A DNA stretch of 60,724 bases from Ministeria vibrans ATCC 50519 (GCA_943704425.1 CALSCP010000312.1:1-60724), one strand, 5' to 3'; shown: positions 3,889 through 12,270, numbered from the stretch's first letter. The notes: generated by a model not told the origin, from the letters alone. Numbers and translations are program-made.

Positions 3889-6800
3889 TCACTCTTTCAC
3901 TCCACACCCCCATCGGTACAAGTAAACCTCTCCGCTGTTGACCATTCCCGCAGTCCAGTCCTTCCAAATACGCCCCACAAGCGCAGACTGGAATGTGTTG
4001 GCAGGGTCCAGCGACTGCAGTCGATGCCGCAGCTCAACCGCAGTTAGACACTCCTCGCCCTCACGGAAGGCCCGTCGGTCGGGGCCCAGTGCGAGGACCA
4101 GCAGCTCAGTCATGCGCGTCTTGCTGCGGTCTGTTGTAGTGAATGCTTTGGTGTCTTTGAGTGCGCTTGTGATGAGTTGGCGCGCATAGACACCCTTTTG
4201 AGCCGGAGGCACTGATGGAGTGCGCTGAGTGGGCAGTGATGGTGTGAGGTCCTCGTCGGGCTCAATGAACACGCCACTGTTGCAGAAGTCGCAGAACACC
4301 AACGCATTGCCACCCAGCCAGAACACGTCTTCTTGGAGGATCGTATTGAGATTGCGCAGAGTCAGGCGCGACAGACGACCGCTCACTGTCTTGCGCGCGT
4401 CACTCAGCAACAACCCTCCAGTGCCATCCTCTGCTCCATGTCCAATCAGATGCACAATCAACAACAGTGAGTCCTGTCCAGCAATCGATCCTGCTCTCAT
4501 TGCCAGTCGATGCATTTGTTTTTTTGGAAGTCCTAGAGCAAAAGCTTCATTGTACAAGACAACATTGCCAGTCGATGCATGGCGTCCTCAATCTGACTCT
4601 TGACCACCCGATCGCCTTTCTTCCAGTCCACCACACTCTCCACATCGCACCCTCGCGCCGTCCACACGTCCTTGAGTAGTCGAGCACTCTCACGCACGCC
4701 TCGCAAGTCATCATAGTACTGAAGAGCAGTGTTGCCCGACGACTGGTAGCGACTCACTCCCACAATCAGCACAGACACATGCGAGTAGATGCCAGGAACT
4801 AACAAAGAAAATAATTAGTGCTAAACGATATTTAAAAAAGAAATCACATAACCTTCCGTTTCACCCACCACTTGTGAAGATTTAGATTGCACACCAGAGC
4901 CTGTCCAGAGTGACGCGCAAGCTCTGCTCTCACCACGTCTCCATCTCGGTACTGCTCGGGGTGCTTGGCGACACTTTCGGGAAGGAAGAGTGGACGGGAT
5001 GCGTCGGTGGGATGTGCAGGTACCACCACAGCAGAGCCGCGCCAGCCCCATCGCAGAGTGCGCGTCGACTCACACACAGTCTCAACCAACTTCGTCCACG
5101 TCGCCCCACACTTGCCTGGCGCCTCACTCAGCAACTCCACGCGAATGAACCACTCGTTGCTGTTGAGTCGAAGTCGCACAGGGACACATCCGTCCATGGC
5201 GAGTGCGTTTGTGCATCGTTGAGTCGCTTCGATGGGGCTGTCGGGCGGACATGCGCGCCACAGTGCCACCACCACCAGATGGAATGTGGCGAGGGACACG
5301 GGAAGTACCTCCCAGTCGCCGGTGGCACTGCTTGTCATCTGGTAGAGGAACAGAACAGCAGGAGCGGGCGCAGTGCTGGAGAGGAAGGGAGCGTCGTCGG
5401 GCAGCAGCATGGGCACCAACAGCAAGTCCCCGTGACGCTTCGCCAGACTCAGGTGCTCCAGACACTCCATGAACGTGCCAACATCACCCACGTCACCGCC
5501 ACAGAGTAGGGGGTCCTTGCTGTCTTTGGCTGCCGTCCACACGAGCCACTCCGCCGCTTCGAGGGGAAATCCCGCCGCAGACAATGTGCGTGACTCGTCC
5601 AGTCTCTGTAGGATTTTCTCTGTGCGAGACAGATCGGAAGCACGACCCGCCTCGACGACTTTCTTGAGCATGTCCAGGGCACGGGTGCTTGAAGCCCGTC
5701 CCCATCGCGCCAACACCACCGAGCAGAGCAGTTCTAGCGCCGCAATCAGATGAGGGATGTCAAAGACGACTGTGTCCGTCTCGCGCACATCTTGAGACGT
5801 CGCGTTCTCACGGCACACCACAATGTCCGCCGCGGACTCCAGATAGGGTACCAGTTCAGTGCGAATCATTGAGCCGTCCGAAATCAACGCAGAGAGAGTG
5901 ATGCGAGGGTCGTCGTTGAGAACGAGTGAGCCCAGATCTGACACGCGTGACATGAGCGCGATCTTCTTCTCTCGTGCGCGGCGCCCAATCAAGTCTTGCG
6001 CACACACATACTCCATGGGCAGAGTACGCTGGCGCACAGCATCATGCATCGCCTTTGAAAGTGGTCCTAGTCCGATCCTTTTCTTGCTGCCGACTGCGAA
6101 AAAGGCGAGGGAGGTGGGGCCGTTTAGTCGCATGAGGTGTTTACCCAAGACCACGCCGACGAGACGGAAGATCGCATCTGAGACTCTCTGGAGGAGAGCG
6201 GCTGGGGCTGTGTCGTCGGGGAAGGTGTCGAGGTGGGTGGCGACGATGATGACTTTGAAGTAGGAGTGCTCTGTGTCGGGAACTTGGTGCATGATCATGT
6301 GCGCCCACTTGGAAATGTGCTCGTACTGGCGCTGGGCGGTCGTTGGGTCAGACATGGCGGAGAGATCGAAGACGACGAGGTAGAGGGACTCCGAGCCCAT
6401 GAAAAGGGCCGGGAGGGAGTCGAACATCGCTTCGCCTGAGAGGGAGGGAATGAAGAGTTCGCAAGGACAAGAAAGAGAAAACGAGAGTTTAAGGGAGAGC
6501 AACGAAAAGTAGAGAGGCATCAAGGGAGGGTAGAAAAAGGGACAAAGACACAGAGAAAGTTCAAGATTCAAGACTCAGAGAGCGAGAGAAATCGTGTGCG
6601 CGTGGTTAGGGTGTGGTTAGTGTGTGTGGTTAATGTGGTTAGTGTGTGTGGTTAGTGTGGTTAGTGTGCCCATTGTGCTTCGTGTGAGTCTGTGCTCAGT
6701 GTTCAAGACTCAGAGAGCGAGAGAAACCGTGTGTGTGTGTTTAGCGTGTGTGGTCAGTGTGTGTGGTTAGTGCTTAGTGTGTGCTTAGTGCTTAGTGTGT

Positions 6801-8977
6801 GGTTAGTGCTTAGTGCGCGTAGTGTGTGCTTAGTGTGCTTAGTGTGCCCATTGTGCTTAGTGTGCGTGTGTGCTCAGTGTGCTTAGTGTGTGTGTGCTTA
6901 GCGTGTGTGAGTGTGTGAGAGTGCGTGTGCTTAGTGCTTAGTGTATGTGCTCAGTGTGCTTAGTGTGTGCGTGTGCATGAGAAGAGATACACAGACCCAG
7001 AAGACAGCAAAAAAAAGTCAAAGATGAAAAAAAAAAAAAAATGCATACCGGCAAAGTCAAAGGTCTCAAGGTCGATGTGGCCCTCGCGCAAGTCAGACTT
7101 GAGTAGAGTGAGAACGGTTTGCATAGTGGCGCTGATGATAGGCGGCTGCGTGGGTGTCTCTTTGCTGGAGAACGTCAGCTTCAGCTTTTCCATGAGGGAG
7201 GGGGTCGGGACTCGGATGTGCGGTGAGCGGCGTGTAGCAGGCGGGTTTGACGATGAGGACGAGGATGCCGAACGTGTTGCTTGTGAAGTGGGTGGCAGGG
7301 ATATCTCTGCGACAGCCGCATCTGTCACTCCGCTCTCCTCCGGCACTGAGATGAGACTTGCCACGTGGAACTCGTCCTGAGGCACTGACTTGAAGAGACC
7401 TGTACGGCCATCAAAGATCATGCGTAGTCGCTTCATGCGGGTCGCCACTGAGCGATCCTTTAGGTTGGGTAGAGGGCTACCCTGTAGGGCTGCGAGCAGA
7501 GCAGTCTTGCCGGCAAGGACAGCACCCAGAGAGAGCAATTTGATTGAGCGGTGGTGAACAGAGCCACGCTGGAGGGCAGCGTGAAATGCACATTTGTACG
7601 GGCCTATTATCACAAGTTGAGTCAAAGACAATTCAGGATCAAATACGAAACCTTTCGAGGCCTCGAACTCCAGAAAGAACGCTGTTGAATCATTCTTCCA
7701 TTGCGCGCGGTCTGCAATCGACAACGTCGTGACCAAGCAATAGATACAACCCTACTTACCAACTGAAAAAGGTTCACTTGCTCATTCTGAGTATTTTTCA
7801 AACTTACCAACTAAGACAATGTGGAGAAGAACACAAGAGTGCAAAACACAGTCCAAATCAGTCACTCACTCATTCGAACTATTCACAAAACTTACATGCT
7901 AAGACAATGCAAAGAAGAACACAGGAGTGCAAAACACAGTCCAAATCAGTCACTCACTCATTCGAACTATTCACAAAACTTACGAGCTAAGAAGACAATG
8001 CAAAGAAGAACACAAGAGTGCAAAACACAGTCCAAATCAGTCACTCACTCATTCGAACTATTCACAAATCTTACCGTCTAAAACAAAGAAGAACACAAGA
8101 GTGCAAAACACAGTCCAAATCAGTCACTCACTCATTCGAACTATTCACAAACTTACGCCCTAAGACAATGCAAAGAAGAACACAAGAGTGCAAAACACAG
8201 TCCAAATCAGTCACTCACTCATTCGAACTATTCACAAAACTTACCGTCTAAGACAAAGAAGAACACAAGAGTGCAAAACACAGTCCAAATCAGTCACTCA
8301 CTCATTCGAACTATTCACAAACTTACGCCCTAAGACAATGCAAAGAAGAACACAAGAGTGCAAAACACAGTCCAAATCAGTCACTCACTCATTCGAACTA
8401 TTCACAAAACTTACGAACTAAGACAATGCAAAGAAGAACACAAGAGTGCAAAACACAGTCCAAATCAGTCACTCACTCATTCGAACTATTCACAAAACTT
8501 ACCAGCTAAAACAAAGAAGAACACAAGAGTGCAAAACACAGTCCAAATCAGTCACTCACTCATTCGAACTGTTCACAAATCTTGCCAACTAAGACAATGC
8601 AAAGAAGAACACAGGAGTGCAAAACACAGTCCAAATCAGTCACTCGCTCATTCGAACTATTCACAAAACTTACATCCTAAGACAACGCAAAGAAGAACAC
8701 AAGAGTGCAAAACACAGTCCAAATCAGTCACTCACTCATTCGAACTATTCACAAATCTTACATCCTAAGACAATGCAAAGAAGAACACAAGAGTGCAAAA
8801 CACAGTCCAAATCAGTCACTCACTCATTCGAACTATTCACAAAACTTACCGTCTAAAACAAAGAAGAACACAACAGTGCAAAACACATTAGGTTAGCCTG
8901 CTTGTTTATTTTTCTTTTCATTTCAATCCGAACCGACCAAATACCTTTCTCTGTTTTCTTGCTTTGCTCATGTCGAC
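3889..8977 (-). CDS. ROCO-type Roc GTPase-COR-caspase-like (peptidase C14) multi-exon gene; 5' end includes the micro-exon array; this copy may be disrupted
   Basis: Roc G1 IKLLSLGAVLAGKTALL. G3 FDFAG|EAMF is joined in frame by the phase-1 intron 7048..6436. Further Roc motifs SLYLVVFDLS, G4 VIIVATHLD and FFAVGS. COR-like LEHLSLAKRHGDLLLVPMLLP. C14 domain VLIVGVSRY...LIGHG (His 4440-4438)...DFCNSG (Cys 4284-4282). The 5' boundary and the COR-caspase junction are uncertain. Confidence 0.75.
4498..4580 (-). mobile_element. 47-bp A-tailed insertion with 18-bp target-site duplication, frameshifting the caspase-like domain
   Basis: CATTGCCAGTCGATGCAT occurs at 4498-4515 and 4563-4580, so peptide MHRLAM appears twice. 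Net +65 bp. The insert ends CCAAAAAAACAA on the minus strand. Confidence 0.75.
6559..6965. repeat. Degenerate GT-rich GGTTAG/GCTTAG repeats with a duplicated block, inside the Roc intron
   Basis: TTCAAGACTCAGAGAGCGAGAGAAA occurs at ~6567 and ~6702. There are many gtggttag/gtgcttag units. Confidence 0.85.
7760..8890 (-). repeat. Tandem array of near-identical 79-88 nt introns separated by 14 three-nucleotide micro-exons
   Basis: Each unit on the minus strand reads GTAAG (once GCAAG)...CTGAT...polypyrimidine...TTAG, then 3 variable nt. Micro-exons in transcript order: 8850-52 ACG, 8762-64 GAT, 8674-76 GAT, 8586-88 TTG, 8503-05 CTG, 8415-17 TTC, 8327-29 GGC, 8245-47 ACG, 8157-59 GGC, 8075-77 ACG, 7984-86 CTC, 7896-98 CAT, 7808-10 TTG, 7760-62 TTG. 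Confidence 0.85.
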
Positions 8978-9659
8978 CTTAGAGAAGTGTATCCAGAAGG
9001 CGCAGGCCCACAACGCGACTGTTTGCACTTCGGTGTCAGGCCCCCGTCGTGTGTCACGCGCCGCTTTCGCTGGTTCAGCGAATCTGGAAAAACAGTGAGA
9101 ACTTCTTAACCTTGTTAAGCTTGTTTAAACTGTAAAGTTTCAATTTCAATCCTCTAATCGTCCCTTTCTCTGCTGAGTCTGCTCCTTCTGTCACTCATGC
9201 CACATTCAGCATCGCGCCGTAACACCTCGACACCCGTCACGACTGCAATGGCGAAAAATACGAAACCCCCAGCCAGCGACACAGACCCACTCAGCCACTC
9301 AGCGCACACTCGCCAAGAATTCAACAGCACCAAGTCCGTGCAACATTCCGAACCGCAAAGACGAAGGCGTGCTGTAACAAAACCGTTGGCGCGACTTTCA
9401 AAAGAGTTCTCAGCGCCAACGACTTCCACCATCATTCTCGAAAATCATCGCCGTGCATTGGGCGATCTCGTGCCGGTACAGCGACCCCAGCTCAATGCTA
9501 CAGGTGCCATTCAACTGGCACCCCCCGAGCTGGCCCCTCTCGCCACCGCGGTCGTGTACAACATGGCCGAGACTTACGCGGCGAAGAACCGGTTCCGTCA
9601 ATTGTTGCTTGCACAGCTCGGTTTCTTGTTGTTTTTGCCAACATTTTTGTCATCAGGAG

Positions 9660-10190
9660 AAATACCTCTTGGCACTTTTTCTGGTTTCTCTTATAGAAAA
9701 TATCCATCTTCTGTCGCAGTTTTTTCTTGATTTTGGCCACAAGAAAAATCGTCTTGGCACTTTTTCTGATTTCTCTTATAAGACGTAGATGGAGAAAAAG
9801 TGCCAGAGCTAGACACCCACACATTCAGGGATAAAAGACACAAAATTGATCAAAAATATCCAAACACGCAGAAAGTAATCGCCTCCTTTTGATTGTTTTT
9901 TGTTGTTTTTGCGGCCACAGGAGAAATCGCCTTTGGCACTTTTTCTGATTTCTCTTATAAGACGTAGATGGGAAAAAGTGCCAGAGCTAAAGAGGTATAA
10001 AATCGTGAGAAAACTGATCAAATAAGCAGAAAATGATTGCCTTCTTCTGATGTTTTTGTTGTTTTTTGCCACAGGAGAAATCGCCTTTGGCACTTTTTCT
10101 GATTTCTCTTATATAAGACGTAGATGGGAAAAAGTGCCAGAGCTAAAGAGGCATAAAAGCGTGAGAAAACTGATCAAATAAGCAGAAAAG
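9660..10190. repeat. Imperfect ~155-180 bp tandem repeat, each unit with an inverted-repeat hairpin
   Basis: TGGCACTTTTT...AAAAAGTGCCA at 9755-9805, 9934-9983 and 10088-10139. A partial left arm lies at ~9670. Confidence 0.85.
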
Positions 10191-10269
10191 CTCTTTCAGA
10201 CTAACCCTTCTCTCCCTCCTTCCCTATCGTGATTTGCGTGGGGTTTTATTGAATTGAAAAAATGCGTCT

Positions 10270-12270
10270 CTATGCGATAGACTGAGCTCGCATAAAATAC
10301 TGGAGGCCGCGCATTTGGTCTCCTCGGGTCATCGACACAAACGACAACAGCTCGAGTGTCAGCTTTGTGTCGGCAGGGTGGGTCTCCGACGAGCTCTCCT
10401 GGATGGAGAGGGCACGCTCGAGGTAGCCGCCCGCACGAGTGTGGTCTCCTTGTGCCAGCAGCACGGCGCCCAGGCTGCCCACCGTGTTGGCGATCGCCGG
10501 GTGGTTGGCGCCAAGAAGTTTCTCTTGAATGGGCAGACACCGCTGGTAGTGCGCCACGGCAGGCGCATAGTCACTTTTGGCGGAGTACGACTCGGCCATG
10601 TGCTTCAGTATCACTCCCGTTGAGGCGGTGTCGGAGCCCTTGTGAAACTCGCTGATGGTCAGCGCTCGCTGCAAGTACTGGAGCGCGCCACTGTAGTCCT
10701 TTTGAGCTAGGAGTACTTCGCCCAATCTGCCCAATATCTCTCCTGTTCGCGGATGATCGGGACTCAGGCACGCCTCTGTCAGCGTCAGTGCACGTCCAAG
10801 GTGCTCATGCGCGCGAGGGTAGTCTTCGCAATCCAGGAAAGCACAACCGATCTTGTACAGCATCTCAGCCTGAGCGGGATCATTGGCGCTGGGCTTCTCT
10901 GCGAGGGTGCAGGAGGGCAGCGCACGCTCAAAGCACTCCAGGCCACCAGTGAAGTCTCCTTGATCCTGGTGCACAATACCTATGAGGCTCAAGGTTTCGC
11001 CGGCTTGAGGGCTGTTGGGGCCATGTGCCTTCTCACGGATGGTCAGTGCACGCTTGCCGTACTCGAGCGCACGAGTGAAGTCCCTCAGTCCCCGGCACGC
11101 AGCAGCCATGTTGTGCAGCGCGGCGCCAGCGTATGCGTAGTCAGGACCATCGGACGTCTCAAAGAGAGCCCGAGCGCGCTCCGCGTACTCAAAACCACGA
11201 GGGTAGTCTTCTTGAATGAGCACCAACGAGGACAATTTGATCAAAAGCATGCTGAGCGGGAAGTCGTCGGGATCATGAATGCAAGACTGCTCGTGTTCGT
11301 AGGCGGCCAAGGCGCGCTCGCTGTGTTCAACGGCACGGGTGATGTCGCCTTGTTCCTCAAACAGGTGGGCCATGATGAGCAGTGTGTCGGCGACGTCGGG
11401 TTCAGGAGAGAATGACTCTTCGACGGCGAGAGCACGGATGTACAACTCAAGAGCACGCGCGGAGTCGCCTTGTTCGCGGATCACGTTGGCCATGAAGTAC
11501 AACGTGTCGCCTGTGAGCGGATGGTCTGGTCCAAGAGTCGCCTCGCGGAACGCCAGAGTGCGAGACGACAGCTGAAGAGCACGCGTGTTGTCGCCAAGGA
11601 CGTGGAGCGCACCCGCCATGTTCTGAACCACCTCCATGGTGAGTTCGTTGTCCGGACCAAGCAACTCTTCGCGAAAGCTCAGGGCACGAGAGTAAGACTT
11701 GAGAGCACGCGCACAATCTTGTTGCTCCTCCGACATGAAGAGATCACCAATGGCGATGAGAATGTTGGCTGACATGCCATCGCAATCGGAGCCCCCAAGA
11801 GCGCGATCGAAGTACTCAAGCGCGCGAGTCGCGTCGTTTCGGCCGGAGAACGCGCGACCAATGTTGTACAGGGTCCCGGTGACGACGCCCGGCTGAAGTG
11901 AGAGGAGCTGCACGCACAGCGGGAAGTCGAAAAGGAGCGAGTGGTCGTTGACGAGGTTGTCTTTGTTGCTCTCTTCGTAGTACGCCTCAAAAAAGACCCG
12001 TGCAGCATCAATGCCGCCATGCAACGGCTTCCGTGCATGTCGGAGCCATGCTCCGTTCGAATTTTCTCGGCGCAGCAGCAATTCCAGAGCGCGCAGAGCG
12101 TTTCGCGACGTGACGTTGATTTCGCGGTAGGATTGCCAGCCCACGTCTCTCACGGCCTGTGCGGCTGTAGAGAACGTTGCTGAGAACTCGATTGCGGATT
12201 CTGGATCAAGGCGTTCCACCACGAGACAGATGATGTCAAAGGGAAGCTTGGCGAGAGGGACGGGCGCCAT
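10270..12270 (-). CDS. F-box-like domain plus kinesin-light-chain-type TPR repeat protein (intronless)
   Basis: N-terminal LAKLPFDIICLVVERLDPESAIEF is F-box-like. About ten ~42-aa repeats of type ALxIrExxLGPDHPxTGxxLxxMAxVxxxQGDxxRALE. Confidence 0.85.
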   Translation of the reverse strand: MAPVPLAKLPFDIICLVVERLDPESAIEFSATFSTAAQAVRDVGWQSYREINVTSRNALRALELLLRRENSNGAWLRHARKPLHGGIDAARVFFEAYYEESNKDNLVNDHSLLFDFPLCVQLLSLQPGVVTGTLYNIGRAFSGRNDATRALEYFDRALGGSDCDGMSANILIAIGDLFMSEEQQDCARALKSYSRALSFREELLGPDNELTMEVVQNMAGALHVLGDNTRALQLSSRTLAFREATLGPDHPLTGDTLYFMANVIREQGDSARALELYIRALAVEESFSPEPDVADTLLIMAHLFEEQGDITRAVEHSERALAAYEHEQSCIHDPDDFPLSMLLIKLSSLVLIQEDYPRGFEYAERARALFETSDGPDYAYAGAALHNMAAACRGLRDFTRALEYGKRALTIREKAHGPNSPQAGETLSLIGIVHQDQGDFTGGLECFERALPSCTLAEKPSANDPAQAEMLYKIGCAFLDCEDYPRAHEHLGRALTLTEACLSPDHPRTGEILGRLGEVLLAQKDYSGALQYLQRALTISEFHKGSDTASTGVILKHMAESYSAKSDYAPAVAHYQRCLPIQEKLLGANHPAIANTVGSLGAVLLAQGDHTRAGGYLERALSIQESSSETHPADTKLTLELLSFVSMTRGDQMRGLQYFMRAQSIA

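Follow-up and report, generated by a model that had tools for sequence, protein, structure and literature searches.

A probable family of spliced three-base exon arrays in Roco-like and kinase genes of Ministeria vibrans

Comparison with described systems

The micro-exon genes (MEGs) of Schistosoma contain exons of about 6–36 nt with introns that do not form a homogenised repeat, and encode secreted products which vary by exon skipping. The locus analysed here resembles them in its runs of very short symmetric exons (multiples of three), by which a segment can vary without a frameshift. It differs in that the exons are 3 nt long, the introns form a satellite and the encoded segment is an internal linker of LRR-Roco or LRR-kinase proteins; the only variation seen is genomic, with no skipping observed, and the locus was not assigned to the MEGs. 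In recursive splicing, a long stretch is taken out in steps at ratchet points (AG directly followed by GTAAGT), where an acceptor adjoins a strong donor; these points leave either nothing or a discarded exon, whereas three coding bases are kept at each step here. Isolated 3-nt exons, such as those of human MAP4K5 and RPS24 and the micro-exons of Drosophila and plants, show that the spliceosome can include a three-base exon. These exons stand singly between ordinary introns, in contrast to the 13–45 in a row found here.

The brown-algal ROCO genes contain LRR exons of 72 bp in phase 2, each encoding one whole LRR, and alternative transcripts have been documented for them (PMC3341825, PMC11378527). 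They share with the present locus the LRR-Roc-COR family and tandem exons with introns of a single phase, and exon duplication and shuffling have been proposed to diversify the receptors (PMC3341825, PMC11378527). Here, by contrast, shuffling involves a 3-bp unit in phase 1 that is situated behind the LRR part and does not encode a unit of the fold. Introners, or introner-like elements, are described as near-identical spliceosomal introns present in many copies per genome (PMC3609843, PMC3879977). They are dispersed among unrelated genes, whereas the present units are tandem and belong to one gene family, and were not classed as introners. A literature search found no report of consecutive 3-nt exon runs, and in none of the compared systems do homogenised introns in tandem occur together with three-base coding exons in succession.

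The reading which we consider likely is that of a family of spliced 3-nt-exon linkers whose arrays turn over by unequal recombination, the copy analysed here being a 5'-truncated relic. Each repeat unit would represent one short spliceosomal intron plus one three-base exon, and the array would belong to a family specific to this genome, whose intact members would encode a variable linker with 13–45 exons and introns all in phase 1. The linker would connect a short LRR module at the N-terminus with a conserved exon preceding either a Roc-COR-caspase-like or a coiled-coil kinase module.

The array and its relatives in the genome

The window, that is the whole stretch of 60,724 nucleotides analysed, contains an apparent 88-base satellite which can be read as short introns alternating with three-base exons (Table 1). 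As proposed in an earlier sequence-only reading, exactly 14 AG-NNN-GYAAG junctions were counted between 8854 and 7755 on the minus strand, with GTAAG as donor in 13 of the 14 and GCAAG in one (at 8585). Each unit carries spliceosomal hallmarks, namely GT/GC-AG borders, an invariant core with CTGAT, a pyrimidine tract and a TTAG or CAG end. The twelve repeat-type introns are 79–88 nt each, and the chain ends, again as proposed, in two non-repeat introns of the same geometry, of 45 nt (7807-7763) and 48 nt (7759-7712). Alignment of the units also bore out the triplets, of which there are eight distinct ones among the 14 micro-exons, as the most variable part, with column entropy highest at the three exon positions and close to zero across most of the intron. 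Tandem Repeats Finder reported a period of 88, 12.6 copies and 90% matches for the array. Of the 27 motif matches in the 60-kb window, 14 fall in the 1.1 kb of the array, and the remaining 13 equal the shuffle prediction for 60 kb. The pattern is not a by-product of the repeat, because non-repeat introns flanking the arrays at both ends keep the AG-NNN-GT geometry.

Table 1. Features of the array and the adjoining gene in the window
Feature	Position	Strand	Basis or remark
Proposed first intron (8944-8853) and first exon with ATG (8971-8945)	8853..8971	-	Excluded from the gene
Repeat part of the array	7763..8887	-	One unit tail, 12 full repeat-type introns and the 45-nt non-repeat intron, split by 3-nt exons
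Fourteen 3-nt exons	7760..8852	-	First bases 8852, 8764, 8676, 8588, 8505, 8417, 8329, 8247, 8159, 8077, 7986, 7898, 7810, 7762
In-frame stop TGA of the spliced chain	8675..8762	-	Base 8762 plus bases 8676-8675, in the family phase
Last chain intron, 48 nt, non-repeat	7712..7759	-	Conserved in C1260
Exon, 60 nt, entered in phase 1, encoding RAQWK	7652..7711	-	Motif follows the chain in intact paralogues
Intron, 48 nt, in-frame	7604..7651	-	Joint 7602-7652 in runs X1, X2 and X5; also removed in L047
Exon, P-loop (GxxxxGKT) and DxxG, first half of a Roc-like GTPase	7048..7603	-	Motifs
Intron, 613 nt	6435..7047	-	Joint 6434-7048 in X1, X2 and X5
Exon, remainder of the GTPase and COR-like region	4847..6434	-	Fold model, pLDDT 77

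Using a two-unit query, the repeat was found on about a dozen or more other contigs of the 29.7-Mb assembly, and parsing of the fetched loci gave chains of 3–40 strict AG-NNN-GTAAG units with variable triplets at no fewer than 8–9 other loci. The genome scan called for by the earlier reading gave 187 matches to a three-junction pattern, compared with 34 in a reversed control; among the matches listed (100 of the 187), all lay in arrays except two simple repeats. Where pairs of units had identical 35-nt flanks on both sides, the triplet differed in 137 of 172. Two unit types were distinguished, one of 85 nt (window, C1600, C1049 and C1260) and one of 77 nt (C73, C43, C915 and C2647), with the core around CTGAT invariant in all arrays of both types.

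In intact copies, 13–45 three-base exons join a short N-terminal LRR exon to the conserved RAQWK exon, in the order of three micro-exons with unique introns, the repeat, two non-repeat introns and the RAQWK exon. The upstream LRR-type exon is conserved in these members and ends one base into a codon, and the exon after the chain is followed by a Roc-COR-caspase-like module in some of them and by a coiled-coil kinase module in others. The check for arrays in ROCO paralogues was positive for C1260, C1049, C73 and C173, where relatives of the three large frames of the window lie directly downstream on the same strand. The downstream module on C915 (L038) consists of a coiled coil and a protein kinase (Pfam Pkinase, E 2.6e-19), and on C43 (L037) the only downstream exon read, that after the chain, encodes a coiled coil. 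Orphan or truncated arrays were also present on C1600 and C2854. It should be noted that the arrays on L034, L039 and L031 hold runs of N and those on C73, C2854 and C2414 reach contig ends; unit counts are therefore lower bounds. A metagenome scaffold from the same or a very close organism (L050:630-650) has, compared with L033, a GC donor after the first micro-exon (AAG) where the assembly has GT.

The near-identity of the introns, and a common short TAAG-like inverted motif at the unit ends, would also be expected if the units were introner-like mobile intron copies and the triplets target-site remnants. This is very improbable, as the copies occur almost only in tandem arrays of one gene family rather than dispersed in unrelated genes, and adjacent identical triplets are not in excess (25 compared with 22 expected). 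When the unit core was scanned against metagenome sequence, just two single matches came up, both unrelated and due to chance. Multi-unit higher-order duplicates instead favour unequal recombination; in the window array, a two-unit block is duplicated along with its private intron variants.

Joined three-base exons, reading frame and the window copy

Contigs of the runs X1, X2 and X5 (RNA-like) and X11 (DNA-like) were placed on window positions 4500-10400. The run types are a guess of the tool used; X1, X2 and X5 behave as RNA because canonical minus-strand joints are present in them and missing from X11. Within an X2 contig, the letters between the two sides of a joint were, after reverse-complementing, the last five triplets of C1260 in genomic order, and within an X5 contig they were the last ten, preceded by the atypical intron end found at that C1260 unit. 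Both contigs map to the window with mismatches, and their triplets equal those of C1260. The Logan contig L047, found by a protein search with the GTPase exon of the window, has flanks at least 99% identical to C1260 and shows a partial upstream intron tail, 13 fused triplets, the retained last chain intron, the RAQWK exon and two introns correctly removed. The last chain intron was removed in the X2 contig and retained in the X5 contig as well as in L047. None of the fused-chain joints occurred in the DNA-like run X11, which is the basis for regarding the fused chain as probably absent from genomic DNA.

As 5, 10 and 13 exons were joined in genomic order in three data sets, the splicing is considered real, and the identification of the units as spliceosomal introns and the triplets as exons, with these micro-exons included in spliced RNA, is established in RNA contigs for the closest paralogue C1260 only. 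The triplets of the window itself were not found joined in any RNA contig, and protein searches for RNA contigs with the window's own exon and with the LRR exon gave no window-specific spliced product. The RNA-like coverage of 7760-8945 is low and partly paralogue-derived. An X5 loose end at window position 8074 carries a 39-nt unmatched stretch, which reads as about 13 typical triplets before a retained intron and is probably a fused chain from an incompletely assembled array. Compared with L034, L047 has one base fewer just before the P-loop codons (L047:240-250), so that its called open frame is shifted; either a mistake in assembly or a genuine frameshift of that strain could account for this.

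Scripted joining of the LRR exon, the chain and the next exon gave uninterrupted open frames through 13 (L033), 45 (L037) and 43 (L038) micro-exons, and in these three loci the chains qualify as coding micro-exons, with an open frame between flanking coding exons. The flanking exons fix the frame so that all introns are in phase 1, and each 3-nt exon therefore completes one codon with its first two bases and opens the following codon with its third. Two parts of the sequence-only reading had to be revised in consequence: the exons are not single codons, as each triplet straddles two, and the array of the intact copies is not N-terminal but an internal linker between the LRR exon and the effector. 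A TTT/TCT difference at the chain start between paralogues, which would alter a residue if the triplets were codons, is synonymous in the phase-1 frame. Stops in the family frame numbered 1 against 5.6 expected (P about 0.02), or against 3.0 under order shuffling (P 0.14), a depletion which is only suggestive of coding as the statistics are weak.

The earlier reading took the array for an N-terminal cassette of a ROCO protein, made up of single-codon exons, from which regulated or stochastic skipping would build a hypervariable peptide within one organism. Since all the micro-exons are 3 nt, any subset keeps the frame, and the near-identical donors and acceptors make cross-pairing conceivable. 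We nevertheless regard this as unlikely, as the phase is 1 rather than 0, the position is internal and the exons follow an unbroken genomic order in all three independent contigs. These show gap-free inclusion with no unit-skipping joint, although contigs are assembled and could hide rare isoforms, and the chain of L047 is not derivable from the assembled array by skipping.

Downstream of the chain, the RAQWK motif was found with minor variation in the paralogues examined (L033, L034, L037 and L038), and is followed in the window by a Roc-COR-caspase-like gene (Table 1). The contigs with the joint 7602-7652 derive from a paralogue and not from the window copy, and neither this joint nor 6434-7048 was present in X11; a window-specific RNA contig matches 7074-7353 with zero mismatches. 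The Roc label given from sequence alone was supported by fold and by language-model features but not by Pfam. The 21 best structural matches of the COR exon model were all Roco, LRRK1 or LRRK2 entries, with a probability of 1.0 against C. tepidum Roco, LRRK1 and LRRK2, and the language-model (Atlas) features of this exon point to COR-A/Roc. A Pfam search of the window open frames, with E values up to 1 admitted, detected neither Roc nor COR nor caspase, and a PDB sequence search with the Roc/COR and caspase-like frames gave no match. At the level of the modelled fold, the window protein is predicted to be a ROCO protein (Roc GTPase followed by COR). Across seven homologues, the HG and C-x-S-G columns of the caspase-like exon do not vary, and Peptidase_C14 appeared in 28 of 30 Atlas matches, at 0.95; the structure model of this exon (pLDDT 46) was too poor for a fold search. 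The label of a putative caspase-like (C14) C-terminal domain comes from the invariant His/Cys motifs and the Atlas features only.

Between the window and C1260, the COR exon has a Ks of 0.136 and a Ka/Ks of 0.25. Downstream of the array, the window retains intact open frames, which are constrained and transcribed. The contig C2467 was ruled out as an allele of the window, being only 68% identical. The COR-like exon has 69 matches over about 45 contigs of the genome (e.g., C1344:12023-13660 and C916:9710-11344), which indicates a large Roco expansion. L045 and L046 are WD40-type Roco paralogues in both of which the micro-exon array is absent; being 99% identical to C1344 and C916, they belong to the same organism and were ruled out as a related species without arrays.

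The 5' side of the window copy differs from that of the intact members. Unit homology begins at 8887, inside a unit, so the proposed first intron (8944-8853) is chimeric, combining unique DNA with the tail of a unit; of the bracket 8944/7712 that had been suggested for the array, the GT at 8944 exists but lies in unique sequence. The first exon thought to end at 8945 was not upheld, no minus-strand RNA joint being found there. Read from its ATG at 8971 (phase 0), it is in a frame other than that of the GTPase exon and meets a stop near 7622. The GTPase frame offers no ATG there and has a stop codon at about 8981, and on the plus strand a GT..AG intron of about 8892-8982 spans the proposed exon. 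Further plus-strand GT..AG introns were present in RNA-like contigs at 9132-9209, 9875-9961 or 9875-10117, 9993-10072 and 10161-10280. The resulting spliced transcript (8892-10281) is antisense to the proposed first exon and overlaps the 3' end of a minus-strand TPR gene (stop at 10270). The search for LRR homology was negative over the entire 60.7-kb window, and upstream of the array lie unique DNA and a 156-bp repeat common with C2854, then the unrelated TPR gene. This tandem repeat (window 9861-10189; L035:5817-6695; L039:788-1283) adjoins both the window array and the C2854 array fragment, with copies on C2647.

Within the chain, two adjacent GAT exons together form a TGA, the first contributing its final base and the second its initial two, in the frame fixed by the family frames and by the open frame 6960-7736. 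With this stop and no upstream coding exon, the window chain does not qualify as coding in the sense applied above; skipping of one of the two GAT exons would remove the stop, a point in favour of the skipping cassette. The window copy is probably a 5'-truncated member whose array no longer codes, a relic. Its gene may still be used with another 5' end, as the downstream frames are intact and constrained.

It is a reasonable, though not the favoured, possibility that the window array is inert, with transcription starting at or after it, or the stretch being removed or never transcribed, and the units serving only as satellite and recombination substrate. The missing LRR exon and usable upstream start, the in-frame stop, the plus-strand spliced RNA over 8892-10281 and RNA-like depth that is low or zero in several bins of 8046-9030 are in line with this, as are the orphan and truncated arrays elsewhere (C1600 and C2854). 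On the other hand, all 14 donors and acceptors are intact and the downstream gene is transcribed and constrained. An inert array is compatible with the favoured reading of a truncated family member, the sole difference being whether RNA polymerase crosses the array. Under the favoured reading, the array would most likely be a relic within the 5' untranslated region of a paralogue that continues to be transcribed, or would lie upstream of that paralogue.

Turnover of the arrays

The chains of the window and C1260 have only the final two triplets in common, despite their low coding Ks. The comparison of triplet order across copies, as suggested by the sequence-only reading, showed that L047 differs from C1260 although the flanks are nearly identical. 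The L047 chain contains the same few triplets as the assembled C1260 chain, in an order which is not an ordered subset and is not obtainable by skipping. L047 could represent another strain, an allele or an unassembled paralogue, the difference in order having been made by unit rearrangement. Gain, loss and reordering of units are supported, and with them the proposal that arrays are rearranged among near-identical introns.

The intron consensus of the window is 91% identical to that of C1049, where pS is 0.51, and the introns are thus more alike between paralogues than are synonymous sites. The 77-nt type is 96–99% identical between genes with different effectors. The LRR exon before the 77-nt arrays is likewise 96–99% alike between L032 (C73, Roc-COR-caspase) and L037–L039 (C43, C915 and C2647; coiled-coil). 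Sequence comparison suggests that the LRR-plus-array module may have been exchanged recently between different effector genes.

Such intron conservation, together with the CTGAT core invariant across arrays, might also be expected if the array had no coding role and hosted small RNAs in its introns, as SNHG14 does with its tandem snoRNAs, with the tiny exons irrelevant. There is very little likelihood of this: a search of Rfam over the array gave no match at E up to 1, folding was modestly better than shuffles (z -2.0, -1.6 and -1.0) in a manner not common to both unit types, and a long open frame is preserved along the chains from one coding exon to the other. Neither a known family nor a conserved box or stem, by which an intron-encoded snoRNA array would be recognised, was found. 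The likeness of the introns fits recombination that homogenises them within and between arrays, or constraint on the introns, or both. From the triplet diversity beside homogenised introns we infer that selection may act on the encoded linker.

In the favoured reading of a spliced linker family, the introns would be recognised individually (intron definition) and the three-base exons joined in genomic order, as seen for C1260. The units would be duplicated, lost and reordered through unequal recombination between near-identical introns, and the length and sequence of the linker would thereby change much faster than by point substitution, which is partly shown by the chains compared above. A more speculative extension, which we hold to be possible but doubtful, is that the homogenised arrays form a germline recombination device that rewrites a receptor linker three bases at a time and swaps the LRR head and array between Roc-COR-caspase and kinase effector genes; the swap is proposed because arrays in different genes are 96–99% identical. 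Truncated and orphan arrays, that of the window among them, may be by-products of such a device, and rare skipping may add isoform diversity within one cell as a weaker addition to it.

To our knowledge, no other coding sequence is split as extremely as one with a run of as many as 45 successive three-base exons would be. Such runs test the minimal exon size where introns are recognised one by one. The array genes evade gene finders and read aligners and look like an 80–88-bp satellite, and annotated proteins of the family are therefore probably wrong. The biological weight of the window copy itself is lower, because this copy lacks its 5' part and coding through the array has probably ceased. 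For the expanded LRR-Roco/LRR-kinase family, the combination of near-identical introns and divergent exons offers a concrete system for intron recombination diversifying candidate receptors, and extends the 72-bp exon shuffling of the brown algae down to the single-codon scale.
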